A DNA stretch of 64,000 bases from Schizochytrium sp. TIO01 (taxonomy: Eukaryota; Protista; Bigyra: Labyrinthulomycetes): assembly GCA_004764695.1 (NCBI GenBank), contig SMSO01000031.1:4502436-4566435 (forward strand), read 5' to 3'. Below, piece by piece: positions 23,536 to 54,800 of the stretch (positions are counted from its first letter, which is position 1; every line of letters begins with the position of its first letter). The notes under the pieces were generated by a model. The model ran no database searches. It had not been told where the DNA came from and was given only the letters and a program-made list of their open reading frames with translations. A program made the translations under genes and the position numbers.

Positions 23536-26210
23536 TTACTGTTTCACGAGTCTTTTTGATATAAAATCCTGTAGACCTCCCATAAATGTTACAAGAAGTA
23601 TTTCCTCTGCAAATTCATGATCCTTATTATGACCAGAAGCAACGTTATGAGCAAGTTCATGGCAAAAGGTTACGTACCAGTAGCTTTCAATATATCTGCT
23701 GGGGTTTCGAGTTTGTAGCTGAACATGAGCGTACCGTGCATTAAAAAACAACTTGCCACCATAATTAAAAGCGATTCGTTCTGCATCTTCCCAGAATACA
23801 CGCATACAAGAAGCGAGATCAGATATATTGAAGACAGATCTCGCTAGATCCGCTATGAATATTGCAAACTCTGACATGAATCTTGCTCGCTCCTGATTGC
23901 AACCAAGTGAGACAGCCATGTCTACATTTTCTCCTTCATGATATAGAGGTAGTACTGAATTCGGAAATGCAAGTGGTATTAGATTGATGGCACTTTGGCC
24001 GGAGCAGTGCGATCTCTCAAACTGAAACGAAGCTGGGGCTCCGTTATGGCGAATGGCAGAGAGATATGGATCATTTGCTTGTTGAACTGTGCCATTGAAA
24101 CAAGCTTGCAAAAGTGTCGAGTTGCTCTGAGACTCGCCTAATGCCACCCCGCGTTTCTGCTCTGGAATATCTTCTTCAACTGTCTCAATTTCGCTGGAAT
24201 CTGAAGAGGGCTGTTTCGACTTATCCAAAGGTGCATGATTTTTTCTCTGTACAGACAAACTTGTAGGAGACTGTTCCGAAGAGTGAGGTAGATTTGCTGA
24301 ACAATTTCGACCATCCGAAGAAGAATGCACAGGATTGGGCAAGATTTGAACTGCATCAAGATCGCTAACTTGATGACGCATCATAGCGATCTTTTGCATC
24401 GCATCTAAGTCCATTGAGTATCCAACAACCTTTTGCAGACATATCTTTAAAGCCTCAGAATAGTAAAGCATCGTACAACCTCCTCCACAGCGAGTCTCAT
24501 TCTGCTTTGGGTCAATACACCTTTTCCCAGAGCTGCAAGACTGCTTTTGTACCCACTTGTGAGTGGCTTCTGGGCTATCGAGCAAAACCATATCTATTGC
24601 ATAAATTCGCTCATTCTGCTGATTCTTCCCTGGAACAACAAGGCGCTGATTCCCAGGTGGAAAACATTTATATACTAGCCTAGTATTCTTCAATGCTTTT
24701 TTGAACCAGGCAATACCTAAAGAACGAAAACGCTCAGCGGTCTCTTTTGCTTTCGCGTTCGGAGCAACCCAGTCCGGAAGATTATAGACTTGTTCTTCTG
24801 CTTTTGCCCAAAGCTCCACTACATCTGGGCAGTGTTGACTCATCTTCAGTAGTTCATACAATGGCTCAGGCACCTCAACAGGATTGAAGTTAAAGTACTC
24901 AGCATCCTGGGCTTCGTGGACGTCATTACTACGACTCACTCTCTAGCATACTGGATACGGCTCACGCACATTCGCATTCTGCTTTTTGAAAATTGATACT
25001 AGCCCATCTGCTAGAAGATCATAACAGTTCTTGCTAAATTCCCAGCTTGACAAATCTGCAGCCTTGTCTTCCTGCATATCAGATCGCCACTGCGACCCCT
25101 CAAGAGCATCACGATACTGTATCAGACTGTCTGTTGAGATTTTGACATTACTAAGACTACCCACGTCTCCTGCGCCATCGGGCTTTGCAAGAATGTCATA
25201 TAAAAACTGAACAAGCTTGCCAAAAGTGCTGTCTCGTTGTGTTTGGCTTCCTTCACTCTGATAATGCAAAGACTGAACCAGTATCGGAATCCACGCGATG
25301 AGATATCTAACAGTAATAGAGTCTCGGTCACGCGTGAAGTCGAACAATTTGTGAAGCTTCATTCCTGCCATAAAGTTCAGCCCAAACCCTTTGATATCTT
25401 TGCTCTTACATACAAATATGCCCCGTGCAAAGACCTTGCCGTGATGCTCTTCGCTAAATAGCACCTCCAAGACGTCGTCACCCACTTTCGGTGTCGGTGG
25501 TTGCATAAAGAGATAGTTTTCTCTCGGCACTGATAGCTTCACCTTACTCGGGGCTAAGAGACACACTGAATGGTGGTTGCAATTATCGCCAGTGTCTTTT
25601 GCTTCAAGAAACAGTTTGTTCTGGCTCGAGCCGCCCTCTTTTTCATGGAAAAATCTCCAATGCATCCTTCCTGTAAAAACCTGAACGTCCACATTCCTGG
25701 CGACAAGCCTGTTGATCTCAACTTTCATGCCTTCGCCATACGCCCCTGCAGCAGCCTTGCTTGTTTTTGGCTAAAACCTAAGGTCAGTGCATCTCTGTGG
25801 AGCACTGTTGAGAAATTGGTCAGTTCAATGTAGGTAGATTCTCCCAAGTTCTTCTCTAAAATGAAGCTTGCGATTATGTTACCTTGTTGAAGGGTTCGAA
25901 CATGATACAACAGTCTTGTGTTCATATCTACTTGAATGTCCTGAACAAACGACGGCTCGCCTCCCAAAGCCTCTAAGGTCCGATCGTACCAGTTTTGTAC
26001 GAGTTCACGAACTGAGCTGAAGCCATCAATCCAACTCGCATATTGATCGTTCATGTTTAAATCAAAGCGCCCACTATCTGCAGACGTTTGGGTTGTCTGT
26101 TGTATATCATTCCGTACCAAAACGCGTTGTCCTCCGATGGCTTTAGTGAATAGGTCTTGAGTTTCTCGGTTTGTCCATCTTTCAAAGCTGATGTGTTTCG
26201 GTTGGCTCAT
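23536..26210 (-). pseudogene. GHKL-ATPase + HExxH metalloprotease fusion gene, copy 1 (disrupted)
   Basis: Colinear with copies 2 and 3 but split into three ORFs. A 1-nt deletion lies in a T run (25764-25768; T5 versus T6 in copy 3) inside the ATP-lid motif, and TCG>TAG creates a stop at 24943-24945. ATG (MSQPKH) at 26210. Confidence 0.8.
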
Positions 26211-26500
26211 TTTGCTTGCTCGGGTTGTTGAAAGGGTGTCTGGTTGCGGCTTTAGTTTCTGAATATGCAAGCGTCTTCGCAATTAGGATCTGCTGTCAGT
26301 TGGAAAACGCGATCTATTTACTGAGTATATATTGAGTAATCAGTTTTATGCATAGGAGAGACGTACGGTCCTCTCATTACGGAAAATTCTGACTTTTCTC
26401 ATACTTTAAATTCCGATTTTGAGGTAAGCTAATTATAGCAAAGAGGTAAGTTGATGTACAATTGATAATGAAAGTACTGTCCTAAAGATTGTTTTTAAGG

Positions 26501-27343
26501 TACCTGCAGAGGTCTTTCAACATTTAGAAAAATCCAAGGCTACTTCAAATATTGAATCTTTGGGAGGTTTTACTTCAGCAACCATTTTGACAAAACCAAG
26601 TTGAGAACAAGTCCTGTACACTCACTTTCGCATTATACTCATCTTGTGCAAAAAAAATTGTCGAGCGCTTATATCTCACGAGGGCAGGACTATATATTCA
26701 GGTTTCTAGCCATGACAAGGTGACAGCATCTTGGAGCGAGAAGAACTCTATTTTCGTCAATAAAACTTACTTTCGAACTGAAAGTTCATGCCGTCAAGCG
26801 CTCGGGTATAGTATTAATGGTGCCTGCTTTATGAGCTTTAGTCTTGGATCTATGAAATTACTTTACGTCAACTGTAAACTCCGTTGCGGAGTCCGAATCA
26901 TGAAACTGCCCTAGTGTTAAGATCGCTAGTTGATTAGAATTAAACATTTTAAGGTCTATTTCTTACCGAGAATTGGGACTTTTCCAAAACGCGAACGATC
27001 AGTATCAATGATGTCATGAGCCTTTGGTTCACAAAAGAGGCTTTGAAAGTTCTTCTAATGACCCAGCGATCCGCTTACCTTGCGCGAGTTTCGAGGGCAT
27101 TTGGTTTTGGAAACATAAAGGGCCCTCGCAGGAGCATTTTGGCTTTGTACAGATCCTGAGCCATTTATTCTGGCTTCGCCTAGCTCTAATTTATCAGTTC
27201 TATGAATGCTATTGTAGTTTCGAGACCCTTAAATATGATTATATATATACAAACTTACTCAAGCGTATATAAGCCTCTTGGTTTCAGCGGGGTGAAGATG
27301 GTGATTGTGAAGTGTTCTTACTATAGATTATCTACATAATTTT
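26501..27343. repeat. 3' flank of copy 2, near-identical duplicate of 31382-32232
   Basis: Both begin tacctgcagaggtctttcaacatttagaaaaatcc and align up to the stop codons of copies 2 and 3. Confidence 0.95.
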
Positions 27344-30043
27344 TTAATGGTTGACTTGTGTATTATTCAACCTTCTTGATATAAAGTCATGTAACCCCCC
27401 CATATGTGATACAAGAAGTATTTCCTCCGCAGACTCATGATCCTTATTATGACCAGAAGCAACGTTATGAGCAAGTTCATGGCAAAAGGTTACGTACCAG
27501 TAGCTTTCAATATATCTGCTGGGGTTTCGAGTTTGTAGCTGAACATGAGCGTACCGTGCATTAAAAAACAACTTGCCACCATAATTAAAAGCGATTCGTT
27601 CTGCATCTTCCCAGAATACACGCATACAAGAAGCGAGATCAGATATATTGAAGACAGATCTCGCTAGATCCGCTATGAATATTGCAAACTCTGACATGAA
27701 TCTTGCTCGCTCCTGATTGCAACCAAGTGAGACAGCCATGTCTACATTTTCTCCTTCATGATATAGAGGTAGTACTGAATTCGGAAATGCAAGTGGTATT
27801 AGATTGATGGCACTTTGGCCGGAGCAGTGCGATCTCTCAAACTGAAACGAAGCTGGGGCTCCGTTATGGCGAATGGCAGAGAGATATGGATCATTTGCTT
27901 GTTGAACTGTGCCATTGAAACAAGCTTGCAAAAGTGTCGAGTTGCTCTGAGACTCGCCTAATGCCACCCCGCGTTTCTGCTCTGGAACATTTCCCACGAC
28001 GGTGTTGGGTTTGTTGAATCCTGGAGAGTGCTGGATTGGTTGATTGGAAGAAGTGTGACTCACGCCCTGTGAAGAAAGGTTTGCAGGAGACGAATTAGAA
28101 TCATATGCTGTATTTGGTGAATGATTTGATCTATTTGCAGAAGAATGCACCGGATCTGGCAAAATTTGAACTGCATCAAGATCGCTAACTTGATGACGCA
28201 TCATAGCGATCTTTTGCATCGAGTCTAAGTCCATCGAGTATCCAACAACCTTTTTGAGACATCTCTTCAAAGCCTCGGAATAGTAAAACATCGTACAACC
28301 TCCTCCACAACCAGAAGTCCCGCCCGCACTCTTCTTTTGATCAATACAGTTTTTCTCGGTGTTCCAGGTCTGCTTTTGAATCCACTCGTGAATTTTTCCT
28401 GGATGGTTAAGCAACATCATATCTATTGCATAAATTCGCTCATTCTGCTGATTCTTCCCTGGAACAACAAGGCGTTGGTTCCCAGGTGGAAAATATTTAT
28501 ATACTAGCCTAGCATCTCCTACGGCTTTCCCGAACCAGGCGATACCTAAAGAACGAAAACGCTCAGCGGTCTCTTTTGCTTTCTCGTTCGGAGGAACCCA
28601 GTTCGGAAGATTATAGACTTGTTCTTCTGCGTCTCTCCAAAGCTTGGCTAGATCCGGGCAGTGTTGACTCATCTTCAGTAGTTTATACAATGGCTCCGGC
28701 ACCTCCACAGGAGTGAAGTTAAAGTATTCAGCATCCTGGGCTTCGTGAATGTCATTACTACGACTAACTCTCGAGCATAGTGGATACGGCTTACGCACAT
28801 TCCAATTCTGCTTTTGGAAAATTGATACTATCTCATCTGCTAGAAGATCATAGCAGCTCTTGCTAAATTCCCAGCTAGACAAATCTGCATCCTTGTCTTT
28901 CTGCATACCAGATCGCCACTGCGGCCCCTCAAGAGCATCACGATAACGTATCAGTCTGTCTGTTGAGATTTTGACATCACTAAGACTATCTAATTCCCCT
29001 GCGCCATCGGGCTTTGCAAGAATGTCATATAAAAACTGAACAAGCTTGCCAAAAGTGCTGTCTCGTTGTGTTTGGCTTCCTTCACTCTGATAATGCAAAG
29101 ACTGAACCAGTATCGGAATCCACGCGATGAGACGTTTAATACGTATAGAGTCTCGGTCACGCGTGAAGTCGAACAATTTGTGAAGCTTCATTCCTGCCAT
29201 AAAGTTCAGCCCAAGCCCTTTGATATCTTTGCTCTTGCATACAAATATGCCACGTGCAAAGACCTTGCCGTGATGCTCTTCGCTAAATAGCACCTCCAAG
29301 ACGTCGTCACCCACTTTCGGTGTCGGTGGTTGCATAAAGAGATAGTTTTCTCTCGGTACTGATAGCTTCACCTTACTCGGGGCTAAGAGACACACTGAAT
29401 GGTGGTTGCAATTATCGCCAGTGTCTTTTGCTTCAAGAAACAGTTTGTTCTGGCTCGAACCGCCCTCTTTTTCATGGAAAAATCTCCAATGCATCCTTCC
29501 TGTAAAAACCTGAACATCCACATTCCTAGCGACAAGCCTGTTGATCTCAACTTTCATGCCTTCGCCATACCCCCCTGCAGCAGCCTTGCTCGTCTTTTGG
29601 CTAAAACCTAAGGTCAGTGCATCTCTGTGGAGCACTGTTGAGAAATTGGTCAGTTCAAGGTAGGTAGATTCTCCCAAGTTCTTCTCTAAAATGAAGCTTG
29701 CGGTTGTGTTACCTTGTTGAAGGGTTCGAACATGATACAACAGTCTTGTGTTCATATCTACTTGAATGTCCTGAACAAACGACGGCTCGCCTCCCAAAAC
29801 CTCTAAGGTTCGATCGTACCAGTTTTGTACGAGTTCACGAACCGAGCTGAAGCCATCAATCCAACTTGCATATTGATCGCTCATGTTTAGATCAAAGCGC
29901 CCACTATCTGCAGACGTTTGGGTTGTCTGTTGTATATCATTCCGTACCAAAACGCGTTGTCCTCTGATGACTTTAGTGAATAGGTCTTGAGATTCTTGGT
30001 TTCTCCATCTTTGAGATCTGATTTTATGTCTTCGTTGGCTCAT
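27344..30043 (-). CDS. GHKL-type ATPase + Wss1/SprT-like zinc metalloprotease fusion protein, copy 2 (899 aa, intact)
   Basis: N-box VRELVQNWYD, lid LGFSQKTSKAAAGGYGEGMK, GKVFARGIFV...DFTRDRD segment, Cys cluster, Ser/Asn-rich linker, C-terminal IAFNYGGKLFFN...TFCHELAHNVASGHNKDH. Confidence 0.85.
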   Translation of the reverse strand: MSQRRHKIRSQRWRNQESQDLFTKVIRGQRVLVRNDIQQTTQTSADSGRFDLNMSDQYASWIDGFSSVRELVQNWYDRTLEVLGGEPSFVQDIQVDMNTRLLYHVRTLQQGNTTASFILEKNLGESTYLELTNFSTVLHRDALTLGFSQKTSKAAAGGYGEGMKVEINRLVARNVDVQVFTGRMHWRFFHEKEGGSSQNKLFLEAKDTGDNCNHHSVCLLAPSKVKLSVPRENYLFMQPPTPKVGDDVLEVLFSEEHHGKVFARGIFVCKSKDIKGLGLNFMAGMKLHKLFDFTRDRDSIRIKRLIAWIPILVQSLHYQSEGSQTQRDSTFGKLVQFLYDILAKPDGAGELDSLSDVKISTDRLIRYRDALEGPQWRSGMQKDKDADLSSWEFSKSCYDLLADEIVSIFQKQNWNVRKPYPLCSRVSRSNDIHEAQDAEYFNFTPVEVPEPLYKLLKMSQHCPDLAKLWRDAEEQVYNLPNWVPPNEKAKETAERFRSLGIAWFGKAVGDARLVYKYFPPGNQRLVVPGKNQQNERIYAIDMMLLNHPGKIHEWIQKQTWNTEKNCIDQKKSAGGTSGCGGGCTMFYYSEALKRCLKKVVGYSMDLDSMQKIAMMRHQVSDLDAVQILPDPVHSSANRSNHSPNTAYDSNSSPANLSSQGVSHTSSNQPIQHSPGFNKPNTVVGNVPEQKRGVALGESQSNSTLLQACFNGTVQQANDPYLSAIRHNGAPASFQFERSHCSGQSAINLIPLAFPNSVLPLYHEGENVDMAVSLGCNQERARFMSEFAIFIADLARSVFNISDLASCMRVFWEDAERIAFNYGGKLFFNARYAHVQLQTRNPSRYIESYWYVTFCHELAHNVASGHNKDHESAEEILLVSHMGGLHDFISRRLNNTQVNH

Positions 30044-31276
30044 TTTGCTTGCTCGGGTTGTTGAAAGGGTGTCTGGTTGAGGCTTTAGTTTCTAAATATG
30101 CAAGCGCCTTTGCGATTGGAACTTGCTGTCCGCTTAAAATATTTGATCTATCTACTTATCTATTGAGTCTACTTCGCTTATTCAGGTCCATATAGAATTA
30201 AAAAATGCAATGTAGAGTTATCCTTTTGGTTGTGAACAGGAACTCCATTTTCTTAAATCGCTAATGACAAATATAATATGATCACAGCAATTAAGTAATC
30301 CAGTATACACATTTTTATGCTAGCTCTGCTATCTCTAAGTCTGTGGGCTTTGATTGAGCTATTTTTGAACAACAGGATTTGGACTATAGACACTCTCTGG
30401 CGAGGGACATAGGGAGATCGCATGATTTGATTGAATTTCTTTTGAGTGGATTCTGCTTCATCCAACTGTTAAAAACTTGATTCCAAGCTGAGAGCGGTCT
30501 GTCTACAGTGTTTGCTAGAGTGTGAGGCCTGCATATTTTGCCGTGGAGTTACGCTCCTAGCAATCAGACTACTTGTCGAGTGGCTCAGGATACTTAAAGC
30601 TTTAGTTCGATGGTTTATGACAGAACGAGTTCGACAGTACACTTTACAGTATTCGCCTATTCCAGTGGACTTCAGTCAGTCATGATCGAGTCATGATCGA
30701 TAAATGTAACTGAAAATGAAAATGGATCAAGTTTAACCCTCACTCTAGTCCTCTGTACCTATAAACTATGTCATTTGCTCTTACTTACGCTTTCGCCCAA
30801 GGAAAAGGATTGATAGCAGTAATGAGATCGCCCATTAGGCCTTCCGAGCACTAGGTAGTAGGGATATGACTTTGGTGAGACACCTGCTACCCTAGAACTT
30901 ACGTATGTATCCAGGTAGGAGGTATTTTGCAAATGGTAAGGAGTCTGATTATAAAGTCTTTCCTTAGACGCAGAGGTTCGGCTGAGGAATCACACCTAGA
31001 AGACATCGCAATTTGGTTTATTTAGGCGAAGAGGTGGGCGGTTTCTTCGTTCAAGTTATGCATATTCTATGAAGTCAGTGAGTACCGACATACTATCACA
31101 AAACTATATGGGGTGTGTACTTTTCCCCCCATTAACAAATTTTAGTTTCTGATTATTTATGAAGTTCCCCTAGTTACTCCCTAGGCTATCGATAAGAGGA
31201 TATGAGCATGAAACTGAAACCCTATTAGACAGGTGCATCATGTCTTTTCCTGAAACGTTCTAGTACTAAATTTTGA

Positions 31277-31362
31277 GATAGACAAGTCTGCATCTTTGTC
31301 TTCCTGCATACCAGATCGCCAATGTGACCCCTTTTTTAGAATATCACATCAGACAGCCTGTG
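31277..31362 (-). pseudogene. Short internal relic of a fourth GHKL-protease paralogue
   Basis: Minus strand reads GSHWRSGMQEDKDADLS, matching GSQWRSGMQKDKDADLSS of the full genes; flanked by non-coding sequence. Confidence 0.8.
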
Positions 31363-31381
31363 CAACTTTCGGTATTACTTA

Positions 31382-32232
31382 TACCTGCAGAGGTCTTTCA
31401 ACATTTAGAAAAATCCGAGGTTACTTCAAACATTGAATCTTTGGGAGGTTTTAGATCTTCTTCTTGAGCAACCACTTTGACAAAACCAAGTTGAGAGCAA
31501 GTCCTGTACACTCACTTTCGCATTATACTCATCTTGTGCAAAAAAAAATTGTCGAGCGCTTATATCTCACGAGGGCAGGAATATATATTCAGGTTTCTAG
31601 CCATGACAAGGTGACAGCATCTTGGAGCGAGAAGAACTCTATTTTCGTCAATAAAACTTACTTTCGAACTGAAGGTTCATGCCGTCAAGCGCTCGGGTAT
31701 AGTATTAATGGTGACTACTTTATGAGCTTTAGTCTTGGATCTATGAAATTACTTTACGTCAACTGTAAACTCCGTTGCAGAGTCCGGATCATGAAACTGC
31801 CCTAGTGTTAAGATCGCTAGTTGATTAGCAATAAACATTTTAAGGTCTATTTCTTACCGAGAATTGGGACTTTTCCAAAAAGCGAACCATCAGTAACAAT
31901 GATGTCATGAGCCTTTGGTTCACAAAAGAGGCTTTCAAAGTTCTTCTAATGACCCAGCGATCCGCTTACCTTGCGCAAGTTTCGAGGGCATTTGGTTTTG
32001 GAAACAGAAAGGGCCCTCGCAGGAGCATTGGCTTTGTACAGATCCTGAGCCATTTATTCTGGCTTCGCCTAGCTCTAATTTATCAGTTCTATGAATGCTA
32101 TTGTAGTTTCGAGACCCTTAAATATGATTATATATATACAAGCTTACTCAAGCGTATATAAGCCTCTTGGTTTCAGCGGGGTGAAGATGGTGATTGTGAA
32201 GTGTTCTTACTATGGATTATCTACATAAATTT
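31382..32232. repeat. 3' flank of copy 3, near-identical duplicate of 26501-27343
   Basis: Direct alignment by eye shows few substitutions and small indels. Confidence 0.95.
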
Positions 32233-34920
32233 TTAATGGTTGACTTGTGTATTATTCAACCTTCTTGATATAAAGTCATGTAACCCCCCCATATGTGATA
32301 CAAGAAGTATTTCCTCCGCAGACTCATGATCCTTATTATGACCAGAAGCAACGTTATGAGCAAGTTCATGGCAAAAGGTTACGTACCAGTAGCTTTCAAT
32401 ATATCTGCTGGGGTTTCGAGTTTGTAGCTGAACATGAGCGTACCGTGCATTAAAAAACAACTTGCCACCATAATTAAAAGCGATTCGTTCTGCATCTTCC
32501 CAGAATACACGTATACAAGAAGCGAGATCAGATATATTGAAGACAGATTTCGCTAGATCCGCTATGAATATTGCAAACTCTGACATGAATCTTGCTCGCT
32601 CCTGATTGCAACCAAGTGAGACAGCCATGTCTACATTTTCTCCTTCATGATATAGAGGTAGTACTGAATTCGGAAATGCAAGTGGTATTAGATTCATGGC
32701 ACTTTGGCCGGAGCAGTGCGATCTCTCAAATTGAAACGAAGCTGGGGCTCCGTTATGGCGAATGGCAGAGAGATATGGATCATTTGCTTGTTGAACTGTG
32801 CCATTGAAACAAGCTTGCAAAAGTGTCGCGTTGCTCTGAGACTCGCCTAATGCGACCCCGCGTTTCTGCTCTGGAATATCTTCTTCAACTGTCTCAATTT
32901 CGCTGGAATCTGAAGAGGGCTGTTTCGACTTATCCAAAGGTGCATGATTTTTTCTCTGTACAGACAAACTTGTAGGAGACTGTTCCGAAGAGTGAGGTAG
33001 ATTTGCGGAACAATTTAGACCATCCGAAGAAGAATGCACAGGATTGGGCAAGATTTGAACTGCATCAAGATCGCTAACTTGATGACGCATCATAGCGATC
33101 TTTTGCATCGCATCTAAGTCCATCGAGTATCCAACAACCTTTTGCAGACATATCTTTAAAGCCTCAGAATAGTAAAGCATCGTACAACCTCCTCCACAGT
33201 GAGTCTCATTCTGCTTTGGGTCAATACACTTTTTCCCAGAGCTGCAAGACTGCTTTTGTACCCACTTGTGAGTGGCTTCTGGGCTATCGAGCAAAACCAT
33301 ATCTATTGCATAAATTCGCTCATTCTGCTGATTCTTCCCTGGAACAACAAGGCGCTGATTCCCAGGTGGAAAACATTTATATACTAGCCTAGTATTCTTC
33401 AATGCTTTTTCGAACCAGGTAATACCTAAAGAACGAAAACGCTCAGCGGTCTCTTTTGCTTTCTCGTTCGGAGCAACCCAGTCCGGAAGATTATAGACTT
33501 GTTCTTCTGCTTTTGCCCAAAGCTTCACTACATCCGGGCAGTGTTGACTCATCTTCAGTAGTTTATACAATGGCTCCGGCACCTCAACAGGATTGAAGTT
33601 AAAGTACTCAGCATCCTGGGCTTCGTGGACGTCATTACTACGACTCACTCTCGAGCATACTGGATACGGCTCACGCACATTCGCATTCTGCTTTTTGAAA
33701 ATTGATACTAGCCCATCTGCTAGAAGATCATAGCAGCTCTTGCTAAATTCCCAGCTAGACAAATCTGCATCCTTGTCTTTCTGCATACCAGATCGCCACT
33801 GCGACCCCTCAAGGGCATCACGATACTGTATTAGACTGTCTGTTGAGATTTTGACATTACTAAGACTACCCACGTCTCCTGCGCCATCGGGCTTTGCAAG
33901 AATGTCATATAAAAACTGAACAAGCTTGCCAAAAGTGCTGTCTCGTTGTGTTTGGCTTCCTTCACTCTGATAATACAAACACTGAACCAGTATTGGAATC
34001 CACGCAATGAGATATCTAACAGTAATAGAGTCTCGGTCACGCGTGAAGTCGAACAATTTGTGAAGCTTCATTCCTGCCATAAAGTTCAGCCCAAGCCCTT
34101 TGATGTCTTTGCTCTTGCATACAAATATGCCCCGTGCAAAGACCTTGCCGTGATGCTCTTCGCTAAATAGCACCTCCAAGACGTCGTCACCCACTTTCGG
34201 TGTCGGTGGTTGCATAAAGAGATAGTTTTCTCTCGGCACTGATAGCTTCACCTTACTCGGGGCTAAGAGACACACTGAATGGTGGTTGCAATTATCACCA
34301 GTGTCTTTTGCTTCAAGAAACAGTTTGTTCTGGCTCGAACCGCCCTCTTTTTCATGGAAAAATCTCCAATGCATCCTTCCTGTAAAAACCTGAACGTCCA
34401 CATTCCTAGCGACAAGCCTGTTGATCTCAACTTTCATGCCTTCGCCATACGCCCCTGCAGCAGCCTTGCTTGTTTTTTGGCTAAAACCTAAGGTCAGTGC
34501 ATCTCTGTGGAGCACTGTTGAGAAATTGGTCAGTTCAATGTAGGTAGATTCTCCCAAGTTCTTCTCTAAAATGAAGCTTGCGGTTGTGTTACCTTGTTGA
34601 AGGGTTCGAACATGATACAACAGTCTTGTGTTCATATCTACTTGAATGTCCTGAACAAACGACGGCTCGCCTCCCAAAACCTCTAAGGTCCGATCGTACC
34701 AGTTTTGTACGAGTTCACGAACTGAGCTGAAGCCATCAATCCAACTCGCATATTGATCGTTCATGTTTAGATCAAAGCGCCCACTATCTGCAGACGTTTG
34801 TGTTGTCTGTTGTATATCATTCCGTACCAAAACGCGTTGTCCTCCGATGGCTTTAGTGAATAGGTCTTGAGTTTCTCGGTTTGTCCATCTTTCAAAGCTG
34901 ATGTGTTTCGGTTGGCTCAT
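32233..34920 (-). CDS. GHKL-type ATPase + Wss1/SprT-like zinc metalloprotease fusion protein, copy 3 (895 aa from first ATG, intact)
   Basis: Same motifs as copy 2. The ATG at 34920 (MSQPKH) is preferred over the TTG at 34992 because copy 2 has an in-frame stop in the equivalent upstream extension. Confidence 0.85.
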   Translation of the reverse strand: MSQPKHISFERWTNRETQDLFTKAIGGQRVLVRNDIQQTTQTSADSGRFDLNMNDQYASWIDGFSSVRELVQNWYDRTLEVLGGEPSFVQDIQVDMNTRLLYHVRTLQQGNTTASFILEKNLGESTYIELTNFSTVLHRDALTLGFSQKTSKAAAGAYGEGMKVEINRLVARNVDVQVFTGRMHWRFFHEKEGGSSQNKLFLEAKDTGDNCNHHSVCLLAPSKVKLSVPRENYLFMQPPTPKVGDDVLEVLFSEEHHGKVFARGIFVCKSKDIKGLGLNFMAGMKLHKLFDFTRDRDSITVRYLIAWIPILVQCLYYQSEGSQTQRDSTFGKLVQFLYDILAKPDGAGDVGSLSNVKISTDSLIQYRDALEGSQWRSGMQKDKDADLSSWEFSKSCYDLLADGLVSIFKKQNANVREPYPVCSRVSRSNDVHEAQDAEYFNFNPVEVPEPLYKLLKMSQHCPDVVKLWAKAEEQVYNLPDWVAPNEKAKETAERFRSLGITWFEKALKNTRLVYKCFPPGNQRLVVPGKNQQNERIYAIDMVLLDSPEATHKWVQKQSCSSGKKCIDPKQNETHCGGGCTMLYYSEALKICLQKVVGYSMDLDAMQKIAMMRHQVSDLDAVQILPNPVHSSSDGLNCSANLPHSSEQSPTSLSVQRKNHAPLDKSKQPSSDSSEIETVEEDIPEQKRGVALGESQSNATLLQACFNGTVQQANDPYLSAIRHNGAPASFQFERSHCSGQSAMNLIPLAFPNSVLPLYHEGENVDMAVSLGCNQERARFMSEFAIFIADLAKSVFNISDLASCIRVFWEDAERIAFNYGGKLFFNARYAHVQLQTRNPSRYIESYWYVTFCHELAHNVASGHNKDHESAEEILLVSHMGGLHDFISRRLNNTQVNH

Positions 34921-36983
34921 TTTGCTTGCTCGGGTTGTTGAAAGGGTGTCTGGTTGAGGCTTTAGTTTCTGAATATGCAAGCGTCTTTGCAATTGGGGTC
35001 TGCTGTCGGTGAGGGAAACTTGTTTGCCATGTTGATTAAGTCTACTTTATTCTAGCCCATGTAAAATAAGAATGCATTCTGTGCAGCTATGCTTTAATTA
35101 CAGAAAGTTTGTTGTTTCAAATAGCCAAAGTCAATTTAAGCTAATATAACCAATGATACAAGTAATTTTGTGCACACGCTGTATGTATCTTTAGGCGTTG
35201 CTCAAGGGTTGTAGGCTTTGGTTGAGCTTTAGTTCAACGTCAGGAATTGGGGTAAATGTATTTTGCCAAAGATTTTATGATTTGGGCAGGAAGAATTGTT
35301 TCAAGATGAACTCTGTTCCTTCAAAGTAGAAATTGATCCCGCCTTGTCCTCAAGAGTCTGACTGCGTCTTGCTCATTATTCGCGGTTTCAACCTTGACTC
35401 TTGGACTTATAGAGGCCTTAATAGCCCGTGCAAGGTTTTGCCGCGGGATTCGATCAGTAATGCTGCGCTAGACTCAAGGTTGCTGGTCGAGTTTTCCAGC
35501 ACATTTGTCAAAATCTCAAAAGCAATAGAAAGAGCTGTAGCAACAGCACCTGCATGTTTATCACATAAGATCGCAGTCAGTCAGTCGTGATCGCTACAAC
35601 AGCCATTGTGAAAATGGACCAAGTTCATTTTTTACCTCACTCTAAACTCCTCTGCTTCAATGCAATGTAATTTTGTTCACTGTGTCTCACTCAGCATACA
35701 ATAATTTAATGTTTTATATTTAATTTCAAATGTTATTTGAAAAAAAAAAACAAAAAAAAAAACGGATTGAACGTTGCATGTCTCCATTAATCTGTTCATT
35801 GAAGAAGTAACTCAGGTCAATATGAGAGGTTCCTATAAAAGCTCTCATTTCTATATCACTTTTAGTATCGGGCGATCTGAAATCCCTATGTAAACTTTGG
35901 ACAATATAAAATCGCATTCTTGTAACTCCCGAAGGTAGTGAGGCATGCACCATGACCGATGGCGTCAACTGTATTTTAGGATATGATTATGTAAGAATTT
36001 ATCAAGTCATCCAGTTTCAAACATGCAGACATGGAATTGGAAAAAGAAACCTTTTTTCATGGCTGCTGTAGCCCAAGTGATAAGAAATCGAGCATCTAAC
36101 AGTATGCACATAACAGCAGGTATCACGAAGTCAATTGTAGAAAACACCATAGATACCGCAGTACCACTAGCATTTATCTGTTAATTGTACTTGAAGAAAG
36201 CAACATGAGAGATCGCTTGGCTTGAGATGCTACCCATGGAACTATACCCAAGTTGAAGGACGCCTCAACTCTTAGTAAGAGTGAATAGCCTAGGTTGTTC
36301 GACACAGATATTAGTATTTACTAGAGAGGGGGTACCTACCTATATCAGCCAATACCGAGTTTACACTGGCTTAAAGTGGGTGTGTGTACCTTCCCCAGCT
36401 AACAAATTTTGTTTGCTGATTAGGCATAATGGTTCCCTAGTTACTACTTAGGCTACCAGTCTGAGTGGATGAGAAGATATGGGCATGAAACAGGTGCATC
36501 GTGCCTTCTCCTGGAAGCTTCTGGTACTACTTACTAACACTCCTTACTAACTTACATAGTAGGCACTGCAAAGGTCGAATCTTCGTTCTTAAAAGCGTAG
36601 CTCTAAGCTACATACTCTGGCCATCACCCACCAAAACCAGCTTGGCAGCCCATGCTACTTACTATACAGACACCATCGTATTTTGCGATGACCAGGCCAT
36701 TCAAAATCCGAAAGTGTATGGAGAGCTATCAAATGGGCTAGTAATCACAGTTCCAAGGCTCTCAGACAGAATTACTATTTATGTAAAAAAAGACTAAGTG
36801 ATCAGCGTTACCTTCTGAATGCTTAACACTTGGGAAACACTTCTGATGGGTTGGGGCGCGTACAAACTCAAGCATGCAAGGTAAAACCCAAATACAACAT
36901 TCAGGGAATGGCCAATATATATAGCAGCAGACTTTAGAGCTTCGAGAGGCATCCATTCTAGCTTCCATTAACCTCTATTTGCA

Positions 36984-40958: not shown

Positions 40959-43715
40959 CTAAAGGGGGGTTTTGAACTCTTGACGCGCTGATGATGATGT
41001 GGAAGCAGATCCAGACGGCGGTTGTGTTCCGCCACGCATATGGAAGAAGAAATCTGCGCGGCGAGCCCCAAATGCAGATCGCCAATTACGTGTTGAAAAG
41101 TAGCGGTCACCCGAAGAGTTATCTCTTTCAAAAATTTCATCTTCATCATCATCAGAGAGAACATGATCACCAGCATCCATTCCATGGAAACTATCATCAT
41201 CATCTTCTTCATCAAGATGGACCTCAAAGCTATCAGCATGGTCTTGTTGCATTCGAGAAGCCTGGCGCCGCCTTGCGGCAGCATCAGAGTCAGCGTAACG
41301 GCCTGGTTGAGACCCATCAGAAGTAGAGCCAAGGGAGGAACCACTATCTTCATCATCTACATCCTCCGGGTCGAATTCATCCCCGTCAAAGCCGCCGCGT
41401 AAGTCATGATCGATATCTCCTGGCATACCTGTGCGAGAATGTACACTCGAGCGACGTCCAAAACCAGACTCAGGGAAACCAGATGGTTCAGCATCACGAT
41501 AGCTGCTGGCGCCACTGTTGCTGTTGTTGCTACCTCGCTCTTCAGCACCTGCCCCAGAAGAAGCAGCGCCACTACCAGCTCCACTGGTAGTAGATGACGT
41601 GAATGGGGAGTTTCGCTTGCTTGAGTAGTTGTGGCGGGACCGCTTAGATGTCGAATAATAGCTGGAACTTGCCTCTGTAGTGGCATTCCACTGGGTTTGT
41701 TCTTCATGTTGGCGACGTACGATGTCATCCATGCGCTTAGAGATGCGATCAATGTCATACAGCGTTCGTTTCTGCTCATCGCTCAGAACTTCGTTGGCTT
41801 CGTTGATAGCCTTGAACATGATGGAGGCACGCGCCATATCATCTTCGGTTCCCCGATGCTTGTCAGGATGCCATTTAAGGCATTGTTTACGGAAGGATTG
41901 TTTGACTTGCGTCGGCGTGGCGTCCGCTTGCAGACCAAGAACAAGGTAGTGGTCAGTTGCCTTGGCAGCCAAATCACGAGCGCGTTCAAGGCAGGCTGTC
42001 CAGTCCTCCGTACCTGCAGCTGTGGCAGTGCTTCGACTTTGCTGCATTAGCTGTTCGTAGTCACTTACAGCGTGCGAGTAGTCAAAGAGAGCCATGTATG
42101 AAGATGCGCGCTGCGCAAGGGCGTTAGGATAAACTCCACCTTTCAGATCAATTGCCTTTGTGCAGCGCTCAACAGCTTGCAAATGAAGACCTGCCTTGAC
42201 GCAAGCTCGAGCACTGTTATAATAAAGAGTTGCACGGTTGGTGGATGTCGCAACCTTGTTGTCCTTCACAGTCTCTGCGAGCTCAATCGCCGATGAATAG
42301 GCACCTAGGGCACCCTTGAAGTCTTCTTGGGCGTACAAGCGATTTGCACGTACCGAATGCGACCAAAATAACATGTCTGCATCGCATAACAACTTCTCAA
42401 CAGCGACATGCGAAGCGTTGCTATTTGTTGGAATGGGGCTAGACCCCTGAGCAGCACGTGCCTTCAAACCATCAGGATCCGTAGTTTTTCTTTCATTGTC
42501 GGTGCTTGATGGACTCTTTCGAGCTGCAAAGGGAGCGCCCGGGTCATCATCATGGTCCAAAATATCGTCATCGATGTCTTCCTCGTCCTCAATGTCGGCA
42601 GACATGTCCAAGTTGGGCTCCTGGCTAGCAGCAATCTTAGCCTCCATGGTAGTGGTATAAGCAATCTTGGCAATTTCTTGAGGAGTCTTGCCAGAGTTGT
42701 CCTTTGCAGTTGCGTTGGCGCCATTGCGAAGCAAGAGTCGCACACATTTGGCGTGGCCTCCTTGGGCAGCCAAGTGTAGTGCAGTCTGTGCACTGGCTAA
42801 AGTAGCGCGTTCAAGATGCTCGCCCAGCGACTTTGCTCCAAAACTCAGCATCTTTTCCAGACTCTTATCAGATCCAGCAGCACTGGCATAATGTACAGCA
42901 TTCCAACCCTTCTTCTCGTCCACGACAGCAAAGGGATCGGCACCACATGTGAGAAGCAAAGTTACCATGTCAAAGGCTTTCCGACCGCGAATGCCCGCTG
43001 CCTCAGACAATGCAGCAGAAAGAGTCCGGCGATACGCCTCCAAGGCGCTCGATACAATTGCTCGCTCAGGATTCAACAAGGCCTTCACAGTCTCTAGCTT
43101 TCCCTCTCGCGCGGCGGTAAGCAACTGCTGAGAGTAAGATACAGTCTTATTCGATCCAAACTTACCGCCATTAAGCTTTGTTGGAGTATTCGGATCATCG
43201 TTTTCTACCGCAGAAGTCTTATTTGCGATATTGGATTTGTCGGTACCTCGCGGGTCTACCGGGGTTGCGTTAAGAACTTGAAAGCGCAAGGCCATAACCT
43301 CTGCGCGTAGTGCTTCGACCTCCTTGACAAGTTTACCCTGCTCCAAAAGCCGTTCTTTGGATTGAATATTTTCTACGAGCTGTGAATCACGTAGCTGTTG
43401 CTGCAGTGAATCAATAAGTTCTTGTTGACGAATGGACCTTGCCTTTTCAAGATCTAGAGTGGCCTTCAAAGACCCGACTTTGTCATGCAATGTGACGATA
43501 GCATTCTCGTAGCGGTCTTTCTCCTCCATGAAAGAAACCTCCACCTCCTCCACGACCTGCTGAAGTTTCTGCGACAGCAGAGATGTTACGCTAGATGAAT
43601 ATGAGCTGCTGCTAGTGGATCTTGATCCGAAAGGGTCTCCATCGCGCCGCGAGGAATCAAAAGTTGAGCCTCCACCGCGTCTGAAGCCGCCCTGGGACTG
43701 CTGCGAGCTTCGCAT
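40959..43715 (-). CDS. Coiled-coil + ankyrin repeats + TPR + DnaJ (J-domain) co-chaperone-like protein
   Basis: Ankyrin motifs GWNAVHYASAAG and QTALHLAAQGGHAKCVRLLLRNGA; TPR ATLYYNSARA; J-domain DHYLVLGL...KWHPDK...AINEANEVLSDEQKRTLYD. First ATG at 43715 (ORF track starts at GTG 43739). Confidence 0.85.
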   Translation of the reverse strand: MRSSQQSQGGFRRGGGSTFDSSRRDGDPFGSRSTSSSSYSSSVTSLLSQKLQQVVEEVEVSFMEEKDRYENAIVTLHDKVGSLKATLDLEKARSIRQQELIDSLQQQLRDSQLVENIQSKERLLEQGKLVKEVEALRAEVMALRFQVLNATPVDPRGTDKSNIANKTSAVENDDPNTPTKLNGGKFGSNKTVSYSQQLLTAAREGKLETVKALLNPERAIVSSALEAYRRTLSAALSEAAGIRGRKAFDMVTLLLTCGADPFAVVDEKKGWNAVHYASAAGSDKSLEKMLSFGAKSLGEHLERATLASAQTALHLAAQGGHAKCVRLLLRNGANATAKDNSGKTPQEIAKIAYTTTMEAKIAASQEPNLDMSADIEDEEDIDDDILDHDDDPGAPFAARKSPSSTDNERKTTDPDGLKARAAQGSSPIPTNSNASHVAVEKLLCDADMLFWSHSVRANRLYAQEDFKGALGAYSSAIELAETVKDNKVATSTNRATLYYNSARACVKAGLHLQAVERCTKAIDLKGGVYPNALAQRASSYMALFDYSHAVSDYEQLMQQSRSTATAAGTEDWTACLERARDLAAKATDHYLVLGLQADATPTQVKQSFRKQCLKWHPDKHRGTEDDMARASIMFKAINEANEVLSDEQKRTLYDIDRISKRMDDIVRRQHEEQTQWNATTEASSSYYSTSKRSRHNYSSKRNSPFTSSTTSGAGSGAASSGAGAEERGSNNSNSGASSYRDAEPSGFPESGFGRRSSVHSRTGMPGDIDHDLRGGFDGDEFDPEDVDDEDSGSSLGSTSDGSQPGRYADSDAAARRRQASRMQQDHADSFEVHLDEEDDDDSFHGMDAGDHVLSDDDEDEIFERDNSSGDRYFSTRNWRSAFGARRADFFFHMRGGTQPPSGSASTSSSARQEFKTPL

Positions 43716-45454
43716 AGTATGACTTGTGCTTTTAACCACGTACTACACGCGGGTCGATTCGAAAAAGTCTGTGTTTCGATGGCAGCAAAGTTGCCGCTAC
43801 AGCAATTCTGTTTGCCTTCTTTGCGGATAAATCTGAGCTTAAGAACTCGTTTTACAGCTATAGTTGGCTTTACCCCTCGACAATAAAAGTCCGAGGACCC
43901 ACCACCAAAGCACTAGGAGACAAGAACAGCCAAGCCCTAGTGGCCTTAATCGGCCACACGGCACAGGCTTCTGTGCAAGCGACCACCAGCTGTCCAGGTG
44001 ATTCAACTCCCGTTTGCTTACCAACTAATACCCAAGTTTGCCGGCAGCTGATCGAACAATCGATGAGCAAGCGAGCGAGCTAAGCCGGCAAGACCTTGCA
44101 CGGACCGTGCGTCTGTAAATCGAGCGAGCTTAGACCTTTGCACTTGTGAGTTTATGCGGTTTCGCGGCAATCTGGTCTCCACGTTCGAACGGCGAAACTG
44201 TCTTTTCCGTCACCCGATTTTCACAAACAGACAAACAAACAACTAAAGAAACACACAAATAAAAACAGAAACAGAAGAAACAGAAACAACAAAACAAAAG
44301 AACGATCGTGAACGAAAGAACGAACGATCGAACGAATGAATGAGCCAAGTTGATCGCGGCGAACCGCACGCGACGACCGTGCCTGAGGCGAGGATCTCCT
44401 TCACAGCTAAAACCCCCACCCCCCCTACAAGCACCTCTGTAGGTTCCGGTGGCGGTACCTCGAGCCTGTCTGCCTGCCTGTCTCACCAGGTATGCACGAG
44501 CAAGATGAGGGTTTGGCTGAGTTTGAATTTGCTCTCTATTTCTTTTCTTTCTGTTCAAGACTTTGAAAACCTTTGAATCTTTGAAACTCCAAGGTTTGAA
44601 ATCAGCAGTTCTAGGCAGACAAAGGAAGGCTTGCTTGCACTGGCGAGGTCCGCGAGAGAACTGGAGGAGACAAAGCTGCGCCAGGAGAGAGGCACGACCC
44701 TCTTTCAAGGGCGGGACTTGCTCGCCGCAGTTCTGGAGGCAGCGGGTTCTGGTCTGGGACTTGCGCGTAGACCCGCCTCGACTGCTATTTTCTTTATTCT
44801 GTTATAGATCTCCTCTCATCCTGATTCAAAATGATTGCCACCTTTCCTTATTAAAAGTTTCCAAACCTCTGGGAGTGGAGGAACGGAATACTCCACTGTG
44901 CACCCCCCCTATAACCCACTTTGAGCCGGTATTGCAAGTAGACTATACGGAATAAACTCCATTGAACGCGTATCATGAAAGCGCAACTGATTTTGTTCAA
45001 AGAAAAAGGGAGTTTCTTCTCTCCATCGGGAGTTATTGTAGTTACACTGAGCGAACTTACAGTTTATATTAGCTACTGCTACCGATTAGCAGCTAACGAT
45101 GACGATGCCGTTAGGAAGGCAGGCGCGGTTTGCAGAACGCAAATTAGAGAAACGCAAATTGGGTTAAAAGGGGTTGCGCAAATGTCAAGTTTGGGATGGT
45201 GATGGAGAGAAGTGATGAGTGCGACTTGAGACAACGCAAGAAACTGATAAAAAGGAAAAAAGGATTTGGGGGACTGTGAATGTCAGGCACTCAGACACAA
45301 AGCACTAAAGACATTCTTCATGGGCATAGCCTGAACTCTGCCCAAGGAGTCAGCTGACCTTTTTCTGCAGATAAAAGTTGTGTGACTTTCAACGGTTCGT
45401 TTGCAAGGGTGAAAAAGCAGAGGCAACAGAGCAGAAATCATATCTACGGTCGTC

Positions 45455-51831: not shown

Positions 51832-54800
51832 TCAGCGATCTGATGAGCTGTCGTTGTCAAGACCAGGGGATGTTGAACGATCAAATGCATTAGGGAGCGC
51901 CTGAACAGCAACCTCAAGATTAGGATCCGCGAAGGAAGGAGGCTCACAACCAACATTTACGCCACTAATGGAAGCAAGAGTATTTTGCACAAGTCGAGAG
52001 GCACTCTCAAGCTCGAAGCGAAGTCCTTGTGGAATTATCCATGAAGCGTTGTCCATCTTCTTTGACTCATCGAGGTCCTCCAGAACCCTTGCTTCATCCC
52101 ACACCTCTGCCAACTTTTGCACACTAGAAGAAAATGCATCAACGCGATCAGGCGATTCTCCAAGGCCACCTTCAGACAATGGCGGTGTAGAAGACTTGGC
52201 CTCCTCATTAAGGCCTTCCAGAGATTCGAGAAAAGATGCGTCATGCAAGGTGCTGATGCTAATCGCAAGCTCGGTAGCTTCATCCATGTTAACTGTATCA
52301 AAAATGTGCACGGTATCACCAACGAGATAATCCACGTGTTTGTGAAAGAGACTTCTTGCACGACGAACATCAGCAGCGGCTGGGTGGTCGTCCTGAAGGG
52401 GGCCAAAAACGGCGATGACAGGTTTTCCGCAGACTGCATGTGCAATTGCGCGAACCATGCTAGAATATGCGCGTGCATCTGCCGGGAAAACGTAAAATAA
52501 GACGGAAGATGCGAGCTCCAATGTAATTAAACGCTCGAGGAATTGTCCAACATTTTCGGCATCATCATGGCGTGCCCATGCAAGTGTCAGTTCAGAAGGC
52601 TTTGTTGCTAACCAGCTTACAATTACTTGAGAGGCAGCCTGTGCATCTCCGTCATTTTCAAGTGGGCAACCCACAAATACATCGTATCGATTTTTCAGCT
52701 TCTTGTAAGGTTCACGCTTATGACCAAAGGAGGCTAACGTGTAGAGCACAGGGTCACCGCGCTCATGCAAAATTGAGGTACCCTGACGTGCAAGGAGTAA
52801 GTACATTAGAGCTAAACGTGCCAGTACAGCTTCGGCAAAACCAGTACGACTGATATTGTCACCCCTAGCATCAACAATATGTTCATGTGGACGGGCAGCC
52901 AGAATAAAAAGGTCGGCATCGCTCTTCAGAGAAGCACTCACCGAGAAGAGAGTCTCAAGACCATCAGTCCTAGCTTCCAAGACAATAAGTCTTGGGACAT
53001 GTGTTTTTGCCAGGATATCAAAAATTCCATGGTCTTCTAGCCTTGCTTGTGGAAGACCAATCATATTCTGCCTGCGAAGAACCTTGGCAAGATCATTTGG
53101 CCACGCCAGGTAATCATTCTGTGCTGGCTCCCCGATGACTAAGAGGATGTTCCAATCGAGACCCATTAGCATTGCCTCAATCTCAGAAGTAGGCAATGCT
53201 GACGAAGATTCTGTTTGATAATCTTCGCCTTCGTGATCTAACTCCTCTGTTGGAGCTAGATGGGAAACAATCAGATTCAATGCACGGCTTGTCTCGTCTT
53301 TAATGGTAGAGAGATCCGTATCTACGTACTGCGCTCCAGCCAAAGAAGGTTGGTTGCTCCCGCCTGGTCCCCAAAGGCCAGCAAGTAGGCGCACAACGTG
53401 GTCGGAAGGCAAACATGTAAGAGTATGGGCAAACTTGCCCACTACTGGATCAAGAGCCGAAAGTTGATCTCGGGTAAACGCTTGACGAACTTGCGAACTT
53501 AGATGTGCAATCTCCTGGCGCACAATCAGACGCTCCAGACGGACGTTAGCTCTTGTGGTCGTTAAAGGACTGATTGTATCACTAATTTCTTCAGTGAGAT
53601 TGCCTTCATCGGGGTCGACAAAGACCATGTTGCTACCACTACCAATACTGTAAGGCTGGTAATCGATATAGTCCATGAGGAACTCATCAAGAAGGAGGTC
53701 GTCGCACTGAGGACGTTCTTCGCGCAGTGATAGGATACAGCGACGGACGAACTTTCGGAAACGTTCGGAGACAATATCCTGCTCCAGGTTGGGCGTCATA
53801 GAATAACTGGATGCGTAGTCACGCGCGGCCTCGAAGTTAGTAACGTGGGTAAGAGGCGCCTTGCCACTCGCGCAAGCCCACATACACATCCCAAACGACC
53901 AAATGTCACCTCGCAGGTCACGAGCATTGCCCAACAAAACCTCTGGGGCAATGAACCCATAATCAAGCTGTTCAGAACGCCAAATTTCTTCCATGCGAAC
54001 AGCAACAGAACTCGGCGACACTTGCAATCCTGAAAGGTGCACATTGCCAGAGCGATCTAGAATAATATTGCGGGGGCAGAGGGCACCATGTGTTTGTCCG
54101 AAACGATGAAGCCAACCAAGACCTTGTAAAATACCCCAAGCAACGCGCGCAAGAAAATGTTCATCTGCACATCCTCCACGATCGAGAATGTCTTGCAGTG
54201 ATATACCGTTGACATAATCTAGAAGAACCATGCCTTTATTAGCATGCATGTTGTCCAAGGAGTCTAGACTAGCTGCTTGGCGTTGGGCACGCCGGAAATT
54301 GTGAGGCATACAAAGTCCTGGGCAGCTTGAGAAACGAGTTCGGATCATTTCACAGTGACGAAGGATTTGCTCTGGCTTGTCTGTGGCAGTATCTGTCTCA
54401 CTCGTTGTAAGCAGGGACTCTACGCGCCACAGTCCGAGAGTAGGTAGATTTACAGCACATTTTTTGCGAAAGATAATAGTTTGACCGTCTAAGATACCAG
54501 AAAGATCCACATCCCTTGTCTCACCTTGGGTTGTCTCCTGAAGGACGCAGATGTTTACTTGGAGTTTAAGGATTTCCTTTCCATTCATGCGAGCAAGGCG
54601 ACGCAATCTGACGGCCTTTGACGTACAGATAGGTAGGTTTTGGGCATTGAGACCTGGCTGCGAGGAAAAGAAACGCAGAGGCTCAAAAGGTTGCCGTGTT
54701 GCGAGAATCAGACGTTTGATGTATTTGATAAGTTCATTGATATGAGGCCGCTGAGATGGGTCTTGTGCCCAAGATTGCGCAAGTAATGAACGGAACTCTG

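Follow-up and report, generated by a model that had tools for sequence, protein, structure and literature searches.

A 64-kb stretch of genomic DNA from Schizochytrium sp. TIO01 (assembly GCA_004764695.1, contig SMSO01000031.1), called the window hereafter and serving as the reference for coordinates, carries on its minus strand three head-to-tail copies (A, B, and C) of a gene whose product belongs to an undescribed protein family. This family can be classed as a new version of the fusions between a GHL ATPase and an effector. Very probably, the protein is built from a GHL switch, a helical connector, a dead zincin-like domain and, after a disordered linker, a Wss1/WLM-like peptidase; two predicted functional paralogues and one decaying paralogue of this four-part, presumably soluble protein would be encoded by the locus. 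The component parts are the following, with residue numbering according to copy C and with local model confidence expressed as the predicted local distance difference test (pLDDT).

34210..34785, minus strand: Bergerat (GHKL) nucleotide-binding fold, residues ~46-237, with E69/N73/D76, T131-N132, G156xxG159-E-G161-x-K163, and T180-G181
33871..34203, minus strand: transducer-like second domain of GHL ATPases, residues ~240-350, with a near-invariant loop R294-D295-R296
33511..33870, minus strand: helical connector from the GHL module to the C-terminal half, residues ~351-470, where model confidence is partly low and where the divergence between copies B and C begins
33127..33486, minus strand: zincin-like fold without HExxH, residues ~479-598, with a conserved H551/C565/C575/C579 cluster
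32845..33021, minus strand: low-complexity disordered linker, residues ~634-692, with pLDDT below 50, the part in which B and C diverge most
32269..32664, minus strand: Wss1/WLM-like minimal zincin peptidase, residues ~753-884, with H851-E852-x-x-H855-N856-x4-H861 at 32338-32370

Residues 1-430 were modeled with AlphaFold2 from a 60-sequence alignment, with a pLDDT of 83 and a predicted template modeling score of 0.85. A Foldseek comparison of this model with the PDB returned GHKL ATPases exclusively (TRAP1, E 3e-5). In VIA, a structure search independent of Foldseek, GHKL proteins likewise made up 50 of the 50 top matches for the N-terminal half, and the matches possessing a second domain cover residues ~50-350, i.e., the Bergerat fold together with the transducer, as found in TopoII, MutL, MORC, and Hsp90. 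The Z scores reached 10.4 for GRP94, 10.0 for TRAP1, 9.8 for ParE, 8.6 for SMCHD1, and 8.0 for both MutL and MORC2; the T6 topo II ATPase was superposed with Z 10.0 and a root-mean-square deviation (rmsd) of 4.3 over 226 residues, and sacsin SR1 reached Z 6.0 only. A homodimer prediction for residues 1-430 scored 0.26 against a mark of 0.32, which speaks neither for nor against such an assembly.

The motifs of this half are RELVQNWYD (N-box, residues 68-76), ELTNFSTVL in the place of DxGxG (129-137), GFSQK...GAYGEGMK (145-163, the lid), and FTRDRD (292-297). Counted over 44-57 relatives, the N-box is strongly conserved (E69 in 45/47, N73 in 43/44, D76 in 42/44), as are the lid (G156, G159, and G161 in 100%, K163 in 55/56) and the positions W185 (55/57), R294 (50/54), and R296 (52/53). 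The DxGxG motif is lacking, since copy C reads T131-N132-F-S-T, and N132, the residue next after the Asp-equivalent position, is conserved in 46 of 48 relatives. With residue equivalence to the canonical GHKL sites drawn from sequence alignment, the adenine-binding Asp of DxGxG appears to be missing family-wide, while the catalytic and Mg/phosphate-binding residues appear to be kept. As the Asp is replaced throughout the family by a hydrophobic or Thr residue together with an invariant Asn, the nucleotide pocket would therefore be non-canonical, and its base specificity or affinity may differ from those of ATP-binding GHKLs. The GHL module is presumably an active nucleoside triphosphatase (NTPase) with an unusual base pocket.

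In the C-terminal half, the model of residues 425-895 (pLDDT 81) displays two zincin-like folds separated by the disordered linker. Regarding the second of these (residues ~753-884), Wss1 (5xbn) was ranked first by VIA, with Z 7.0 and an rmsd of 3.4 over 108 of 128 residues, followed by S. pombe Wss1 (Z 6.3) and then by YbeY, SPRTN, selecase, and abylysin. The motif HELAHNVASGH occupies residues 851-861, and the family profile aligns HELAHNxxxxH with HELTHNLFGPH of Wss1 (E 0.06). Among 80 relatives, H851, E852, and H861 are found in all 80 and H855 in 79; the HExxHx5H signature being near-invariant, an active peptidase is therefore predicted. The first fold (residues ~479-598) matched 2ejq/TTHA0227 (Z 6.0) and the zincin-like 3e11 (Z 5.8), as well as HtpX and Ste24, in a structure search. 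Lacking HExxH, it appears to be catalytically dead, and its conserved cluster (H551 in 40/44, C575 in 40/43, C579 in 41/45, with C565 also conserved) is probably a structural metal site. Whole-protein naming by Pfam, PDB sequence, PADLOC, and NCBI-style searches gave a sub-threshold WLM match and nothing else.

The peptidase shares clear homology with the C-terminal end of fungal DUF3684/Tiamat-like proteins: hhalign of the peptidase against the C-terminus of the fungal TmtA-positive/Tiamat-like set gave a probability of 99.5% (E 8.5e-23). The N-terminal domain, for its part, belongs by sequence with an uncharacterized phage family, phrog_6077, in a clade that more distantly takes in phage RIIA. 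The phrog_6077 profile matches the protein with E 9.9e-15, with partial coverage (residues 125-300 against positions 43-218 of a 366-position profile). When the N-terminal half was compared with predicted viral structures using Foldseek, the best matches were uncharacterized phage proteins of 360-440 aa (E 2e-16 to 1e-10), followed by many RIIA proteins at about 1e-6. The phrog_6077 family occurs in 106 phage records, including PaMx11-like Pseudomonas phages and Vibrio, Pectobacterium, and other phages, where its members are annotated as hypothetical, as "histidine kinase-like ATPase" or as "RIIA lysis inhibitor" and sit amid DNA-metabolism genes. One member of this type, NVP1158O_57 from a Vibrio phage, passes Pfam HATPase_c_3. 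Most members from cultured phages have no zincin. However, two IMG/VR phage contigs (L017:5992-7359 and L018:1310-2614) encode proteins of 434-455 aa in which a phrog_6077 GHKL-like domain is followed by a C-terminal HExxH (SprT-like) zincin, and these amount to a small counterpart, in viruses of prokaryotes, of the same two-module architecture. The peptidase can also be found alone, as proteins of 152-157 aa with the motif AFNxxGxLFFN...CHELAHNx4H, adjoined by a RING-finger protein, in two AT-rich IMG/VR contigs of 78 and 85 kb (L005:7755-8228 and L006:7797-8255) which look like giant-virus contigs. Two scans of bacterial and archaeal genome contigs, with N-domain and phage-type patterns, gave no confirmed relative, although these patterns are narrow and the result is not evidence of absence. 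A phrog_6077 search of the Thermus thermophilus control gave a match.

The family is rare, patchily spread over many eukaryotic supergroups, and represented neither in Pfam nor in PADLOC. Nine unnamed metagenomic proteins with 36-42% identity came out of a word-indexed search, and phmmer against 1.84 billion cluster representatives gave 489 matches at E<=1e-3, 28 of them below 1e-30. Many of these are full-length (750-1100 aa) and others cover the N-terminal or the C-terminal half alone. Named members come from Ancoracysta twista, Palpitomonas bilix, Chromera velia (A0A0G4IG08), Mesostigma viride, Chlorokybus atmophyticus, Botryobasidium botryosum (KDQ13404.1), Ptychodera flava, and MMETSP transcripts; several are known from transcriptomes and family members are therefore expressed in those species. 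The two halves of the protein behave as mobile modules. Elsewhere, the N-terminal domain is fused to a C5 DNA methylase, DnaJ, TRAF/XAF1 zinc fingers, or RING fingers, the carriers of such fusions being P0114 (the B. botryosum protein KDQ13404.1), P0067 (from Chlorokybus), P0057, and two RING-bearing members. The unit formed by the middle domain and the peptidase exists alone (P0026) or behind an M16 peptidase fragment (P0040), and the peptidase alone ends fungal-type proteins of 1400-1700 aa with SACS/HATPase_c_3 and DUF3684 (P0095 and P0111), both of which match the PADLOC Tiamat model TmtA. In the TIO01 genome, two canonical WLM genes and one SprT-like gene are present at other sites. The same genome also contains, on another contig, a separate 2143-aa frame (G000:C31:7429969-7434426) matching a fungal Tiamat-like protein with a SACS-type GHKL and a DUF3684-like core.

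A preliminary description of the locus, made from the sequence alone, anticipated much of this. The motifs that it quoted (N-box, lid, ELTNFSTVL, RDRD, and HELAHNVASGH) all lie at the residues given above. Its GHKL ATPase with a degenerate DxGxG agrees with what Foldseek and VIA returned and with the degeneracy of the Asp position in relatives, and its Wss1/WLM-type zincin with HExxHx5H agrees with Wss1 as the top structural match and with the profile alignment of the zinc site; structural searches thus found both folds, the absence of which it had named as grounds for abandoning its proposal. The resemblance that it suggested between the N-terminal domain and a phage/fungal subfamily was recovered as well (phrog_6077, phage proteins as best structural matches, and the Botryobasidium member), as was the likeness of the C-terminus to DUF3684-type fungal proteins. 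It overlooked the broken state of copy A, the second (dead) zincin-like domain and the phage contigs in which GHKL and HExxH domains are fused.

The array, delineated by open reading frame (ORF) listing and repeat finding, has start-to-start spacings of 3.83 and 4.88 kb and comprises the following features.

32233..34920, minus strand: copy C, intact, 895 aa from the ATG at 34920, with its stop codon at 32233-32235
27344..30043, minus strand: copy B, intact, 899 aa, 87% identical to C, with the main divergence at aa ~410-716
23536..26210, minus strand: copy A, a pseudogene in GCA_004764695.1 with two defects and with its last ~25 codons divergent
31266..31332, minus strand: gene relic of 67 nt in the B-C spacer, corresponding to aa 371-397
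26501..27343, no strand assigned: 3' flank of copy B, with a 96% identical duplicate at 31382-32232

All three copies are devoid of introns, as indicated by the end-to-end alignment of B and C with homologues, and the open frame of copy C continues past its ATG to a TTG at 34992. Copy A is broken into ORFs of 185, 261, and 467 aa. According to DNA alignment and inspection, its first defect is a 1-bp deletion in an A-run (A6 to A5, ~25764), which falls at codon 149/150 and shortly precedes the GxxGxG lid, and its second is an in-frame TCG>TAG change at 24943-24945 (codon S423). An assembly error is conceivable for the homopolymer deletion and less likely for the TAG substitution. Since the 3' flank of B is itself duplicated, the duplication unit includes downstream intergenic DNA. 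A stretch of ~155 nt in the B-C spacer (31110-31268) is 70% identical to 36379-36529, upstream of the array. Queries with the full protein, the peptidase alone, and phrog_6077 found no copy other than A, B, and C in the 64-Mb genome, all three of which are matched by phrog_6077. The preliminary description was thus right as to the number and orientation of the three ~2.7-kb paralogues and the lack of introns, with the correction that only B and C are intact.

The similarity between copies varies sharply along the gene. Copies A and C are 95-100% identical throughout, B falls to 70-85% identity between C coordinates ~33700 and 32800, and all three are ~100% identical over 32790-32340. For B against C, the synonymous divergence (dS) amounts to 0.00-0.02 at the 3' end and 0.05-0.12 within the GHL module, and it reaches 0.36-0.55 over aa 540-716; such sharp swings form a pattern typical of gene conversion. 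The paralogues are gene-conversion mosaics under purifying selection: the ratio of non-synonymous to synonymous divergence (omega) for B and C is 0.34 in the N-terminal third, i.e., the GHL module, and 0.54 in the variable middle. Positive selection for this pair was considered and rejected, with omega below 1 in every 60-codon window with data. Contigs from other strains show one copy with a different mosaic, which is intact at both sites broken in copy A, and near-identical sequence recurs in the sequencing runs of 11 studies, filed under several organism labels. The birth-and-death evolution proposed in the preliminary description therefore holds to a modest extent, with one pseudogene, one relic, and gene-conversion mosaics in its favor and an omega below 1 everywhere. 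Its suggestion of horizontal acquisition is not sustained, the family spanning many eukaryotic supergroups and the base composition being unremarkable. A foreign composition of the array was indeed rejected, its GC content of 0.40-0.45 lying inside the range of 0.36-0.53 across the window.

The array is surrounded by ordinary eukaryotic genes, encoding a PCI protein, an Ank/TPR/DnaJ protein, DNA ligase I, a kinase, and a sulfatase, and no transposon or viral genes flanking it were found in the window. Within this neighborhood, a 926-aa ORF at 40959-43739 (minus strand) harbors ankyrin repeats, TPR motifs, and a DnaJ domain, and a 1720-aa ORF at 51832-56994 (minus strand) has two protein-kinase-like stretches. 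An ORF at 61029-62141 (plus strand) pairs Big_9 (bacterial Ig-like) with Laminin_B, an unusual combination for a protist.

As to how the modules could work together, nucleotide binding and hydrolysis by the GHL module would drive a conformational or dimerization cycle comparable to those of Hsp90, MutL, MORC, and Tiamat. In this scheme, E69 would likely act as the general base and N73 as the Mg ligand, together with the GxxGxG lid and with R294/R296, which the transducer would contribute. Such a cycle would determine whether the peptidase can reach, or come close to, a client bound by the middle domains or else the linker within the same protein. That the protein is such a switch-controlled protease can be believed about as readily as doubted. 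Regarding its biological role, the leading guess, put forward tentatively, is one in conflict or surveillance, i.e., antiviral, anti-mobile-element, or stress-triggered proteolysis; it is suggested by analogy, because of the phage relatives, the shuffled effectors, the patchy distribution, and the local turnover. It is rather improbable that the most specific form of this proposal holds in full, in which a phage-derived GHKL NTPase with an Asp-less pocket would gate a Wss1-like protease, the two forming an autonomous sensor-effector against viruses or mobile elements and a small eukaryotic equivalent of Tiamat-like systems.

Several observations weigh against a defensive switch-controlled protease. 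The position aligned with the Asp of DxGxG is T, V, C, Y, or I in the eukaryotic family and S, H, K, or D in four aligned phage proteins and, with this Asp absent, the module could be a non-hydrolysing scaffold. For the peptidase, Pfam WLM (PF08325) aligns 18 residues at 15-17 bits, below its gathering cut-off of 26. In comparison with PADLOC, TmtA included, neither the protein nor four of its relatives gave a match at E<=1, whereas the fungal P0111 and P0095 do match. Membership of the N-terminal domain in the sacsin/Tiamat clade is not claimed, since profile-profile comparison aligns the N-box alone (E 0.003, probability 10%). No sign of diversifying selection can be seen between B and C, with omega at 0.34-0.54. 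The gene neighborhood, made up of ordinary eukaryotic genes, offers no link to defense. Finally, Logan contigs X15-X17 cover the gene bodies, with an "RNA" label that is a guess and no proof of transcription.

A housekeeping function is one alternative. The protein would then be a protein-quality-control or DNA-protein-crosslink protease, in which an enzyme like Wss1 or SPRTN is joined to a chaperone ATPase like that of Hsp90 or sacsin for the handling of clients, with no role in conflict. The top structural matches, Hsp90 paralogues for the N-terminal half and Wss1 for the C-terminal end, are consistent with this, as are the purifying selection on the catalytic modules and the one relative with a DnaJ domain (and a weak, sub-threshold SAP-like match), sacsin likewise having DnaJ. 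Moreover, roles other than defense are known for eukaryotic relatives of Tiamat such as NO VEIN and sacsin (bioRxiv 10.64898/2026.09.30.754977). However, the genome already has its two canonical WLM genes and its SprT-like gene, one copy in the array is decaying, the nearest sequence relatives of the N-terminal domain are phage proteins, and the family, with 489 matches out of 1.84 billion cluster representatives, is rare, patchy and not a conserved orthologue. Such a housekeeping function is considered unlikely.

It is also conceivable, with a still smaller probability, that the GHKL-like module, for want of the DxGxG Asp, has lost nucleotide binding and serves as a dimerization or client platform for a peptidase that is constitutive or regulated otherwise. 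Neither the eukaryotic family nor most of the examined phage relatives retain the Asp that contacts adenine, and the D79N substitution in Hsp90 abolishes ATP binding. In contrast, E69, N73, the GxxGxG lid, K163, and R294/R296 are 93-100% conserved over very divergent sequences, and such conservation of residues specific to Mg-NTP would be hard to explain without catalysis. A recently acquired selfish or virus-derived cargo (e.g., from a giant virus or a mobile element), without host function and drifting to loss, would agree with the phage and giant-virus-like homologues of both modules, the pseudogene and relic in the array, and the patchy phyletic distribution, yet it is very improbable given the ordinary GC content, the eukaryotic housekeeping neighbors without transposon or viral flanking genes, the two full ORFs kept with omega well below 1, the recurrence of near-identical sequence under several organism labels in 11 studies, and the full-length homologues in transcriptomes of unrelated protists.

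The interest of a switch-controlled protease of this kind lies in three unusual traits: an ATPase module that ties eukaryotes to an uncharacterized phage family (phrog_6077/RIIA-like), an effector that is an active-looking Wss1-type protease also present in fungal Tiamat-like proteins, and a nucleotide pocket without the otherwise universal adenine-binding Asp. As an intronless gene product of ~900 aa that is predicted to be soluble, it is a tractable case for how a GHL cycle can control a protease, and the locus gives PHROG 6077 a structural and functional handle.

Compared with known systems, the protein shares the Bergerat fold and a transducer-like second domain, the N-box, the GxxGxG lid, and probably a basic catalytic loop from the second domain with Hsp90, sacsin, MORC, SMCHD1, and RIIA. 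At the level of motifs, its RDR-S-I may recall NLSRExL of Hsp90 and ERESI of Tiamat-like proteins. It nevertheless forms a sequence family of its own, without the DxGxG Asp, the Hsp90 C-terminal dimerization domain, the CW and coiled-coil domains, or an S5-fold assignment. The SACS repeats, DnaJ, and HEPN C-terminus of sacsin have no Pfam match in it. With Wss1/WLM and SPRTN, it has in common the minimal zincin fold and an identical HExxHNx4H spacing with the third His ligand; it differs from them in scoring below the Pfam WLM threshold, in being fused to a GHL module, and in that no SUMO-, ubiquitin-, or VCP-binding motifs were identified.

The phrog_6077 phage proteins (~360-390 aa, e.g., gp71 of Pseudomonas phage PaMx11 and NVP1158O_57 of a Vibrio phage) share the N-terminal domain both by sequence (E 1e-14) and by fold (Foldseek E 2e-16), with RELxQN(W/A)xD, LLLGxSxK, GxFGEGxK, and [DE]R[DN]R as common motifs and a degenerate DxGxG Asp in both. 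Unlike the Schizochytrium protein, they are half as long and mostly lack the peptidase, the dead zincin domain, and the linker. The two phage-contig fusions also end in an HExxH zincin, but this one is SprT-like (HEYGH...GH), not the WLM-like HELAHNx4H.

In Tiamat, the GHL ATPase is succeeded by TPR-like folds, then by an inactive Wss1-like fold and finally by a nuclease; in "Tiamat-like" proteins the effector has been exchanged, for a peptidase among others, and a metallopeptidase is frequently found at the end of ATPase-DUF3684 fusions (bioRxiv 10.64898/2026.09.30.754977). The protein described here has no DUF3684 or SACS match in Pfam, lacks the DUF3684 or TPR-like core as well as the PD-(D/E)xK nuclease, appears to draw its ATPase from another lineage, and is half the size. 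Between its N-terminal domain and the fungal Tiamat-like GHKL, a weak collinear stretch before the R-[DE]-S-I loop can be aligned (E 0.11). Like the fungal DUF3684/Tiamat-like proteins and bacterial TmtA, it has an N-terminal GHL ATPase and a C-terminal effector and, as in Tiamat, where the inactive Wss1-like fold precedes the effector, a dead zincin-like fold is found at this place, a likeness of position and fold. Fusions of GHL ATPases with effectors are an emerging cross-kingdom theme in genome defense and quality control (MORC, SMCHD1, sacsin, and bacterial Tiamat), and a defense role of the present family, if true, would extend the Tiamat/sacsin story in protists by a branch that relies on a protease.

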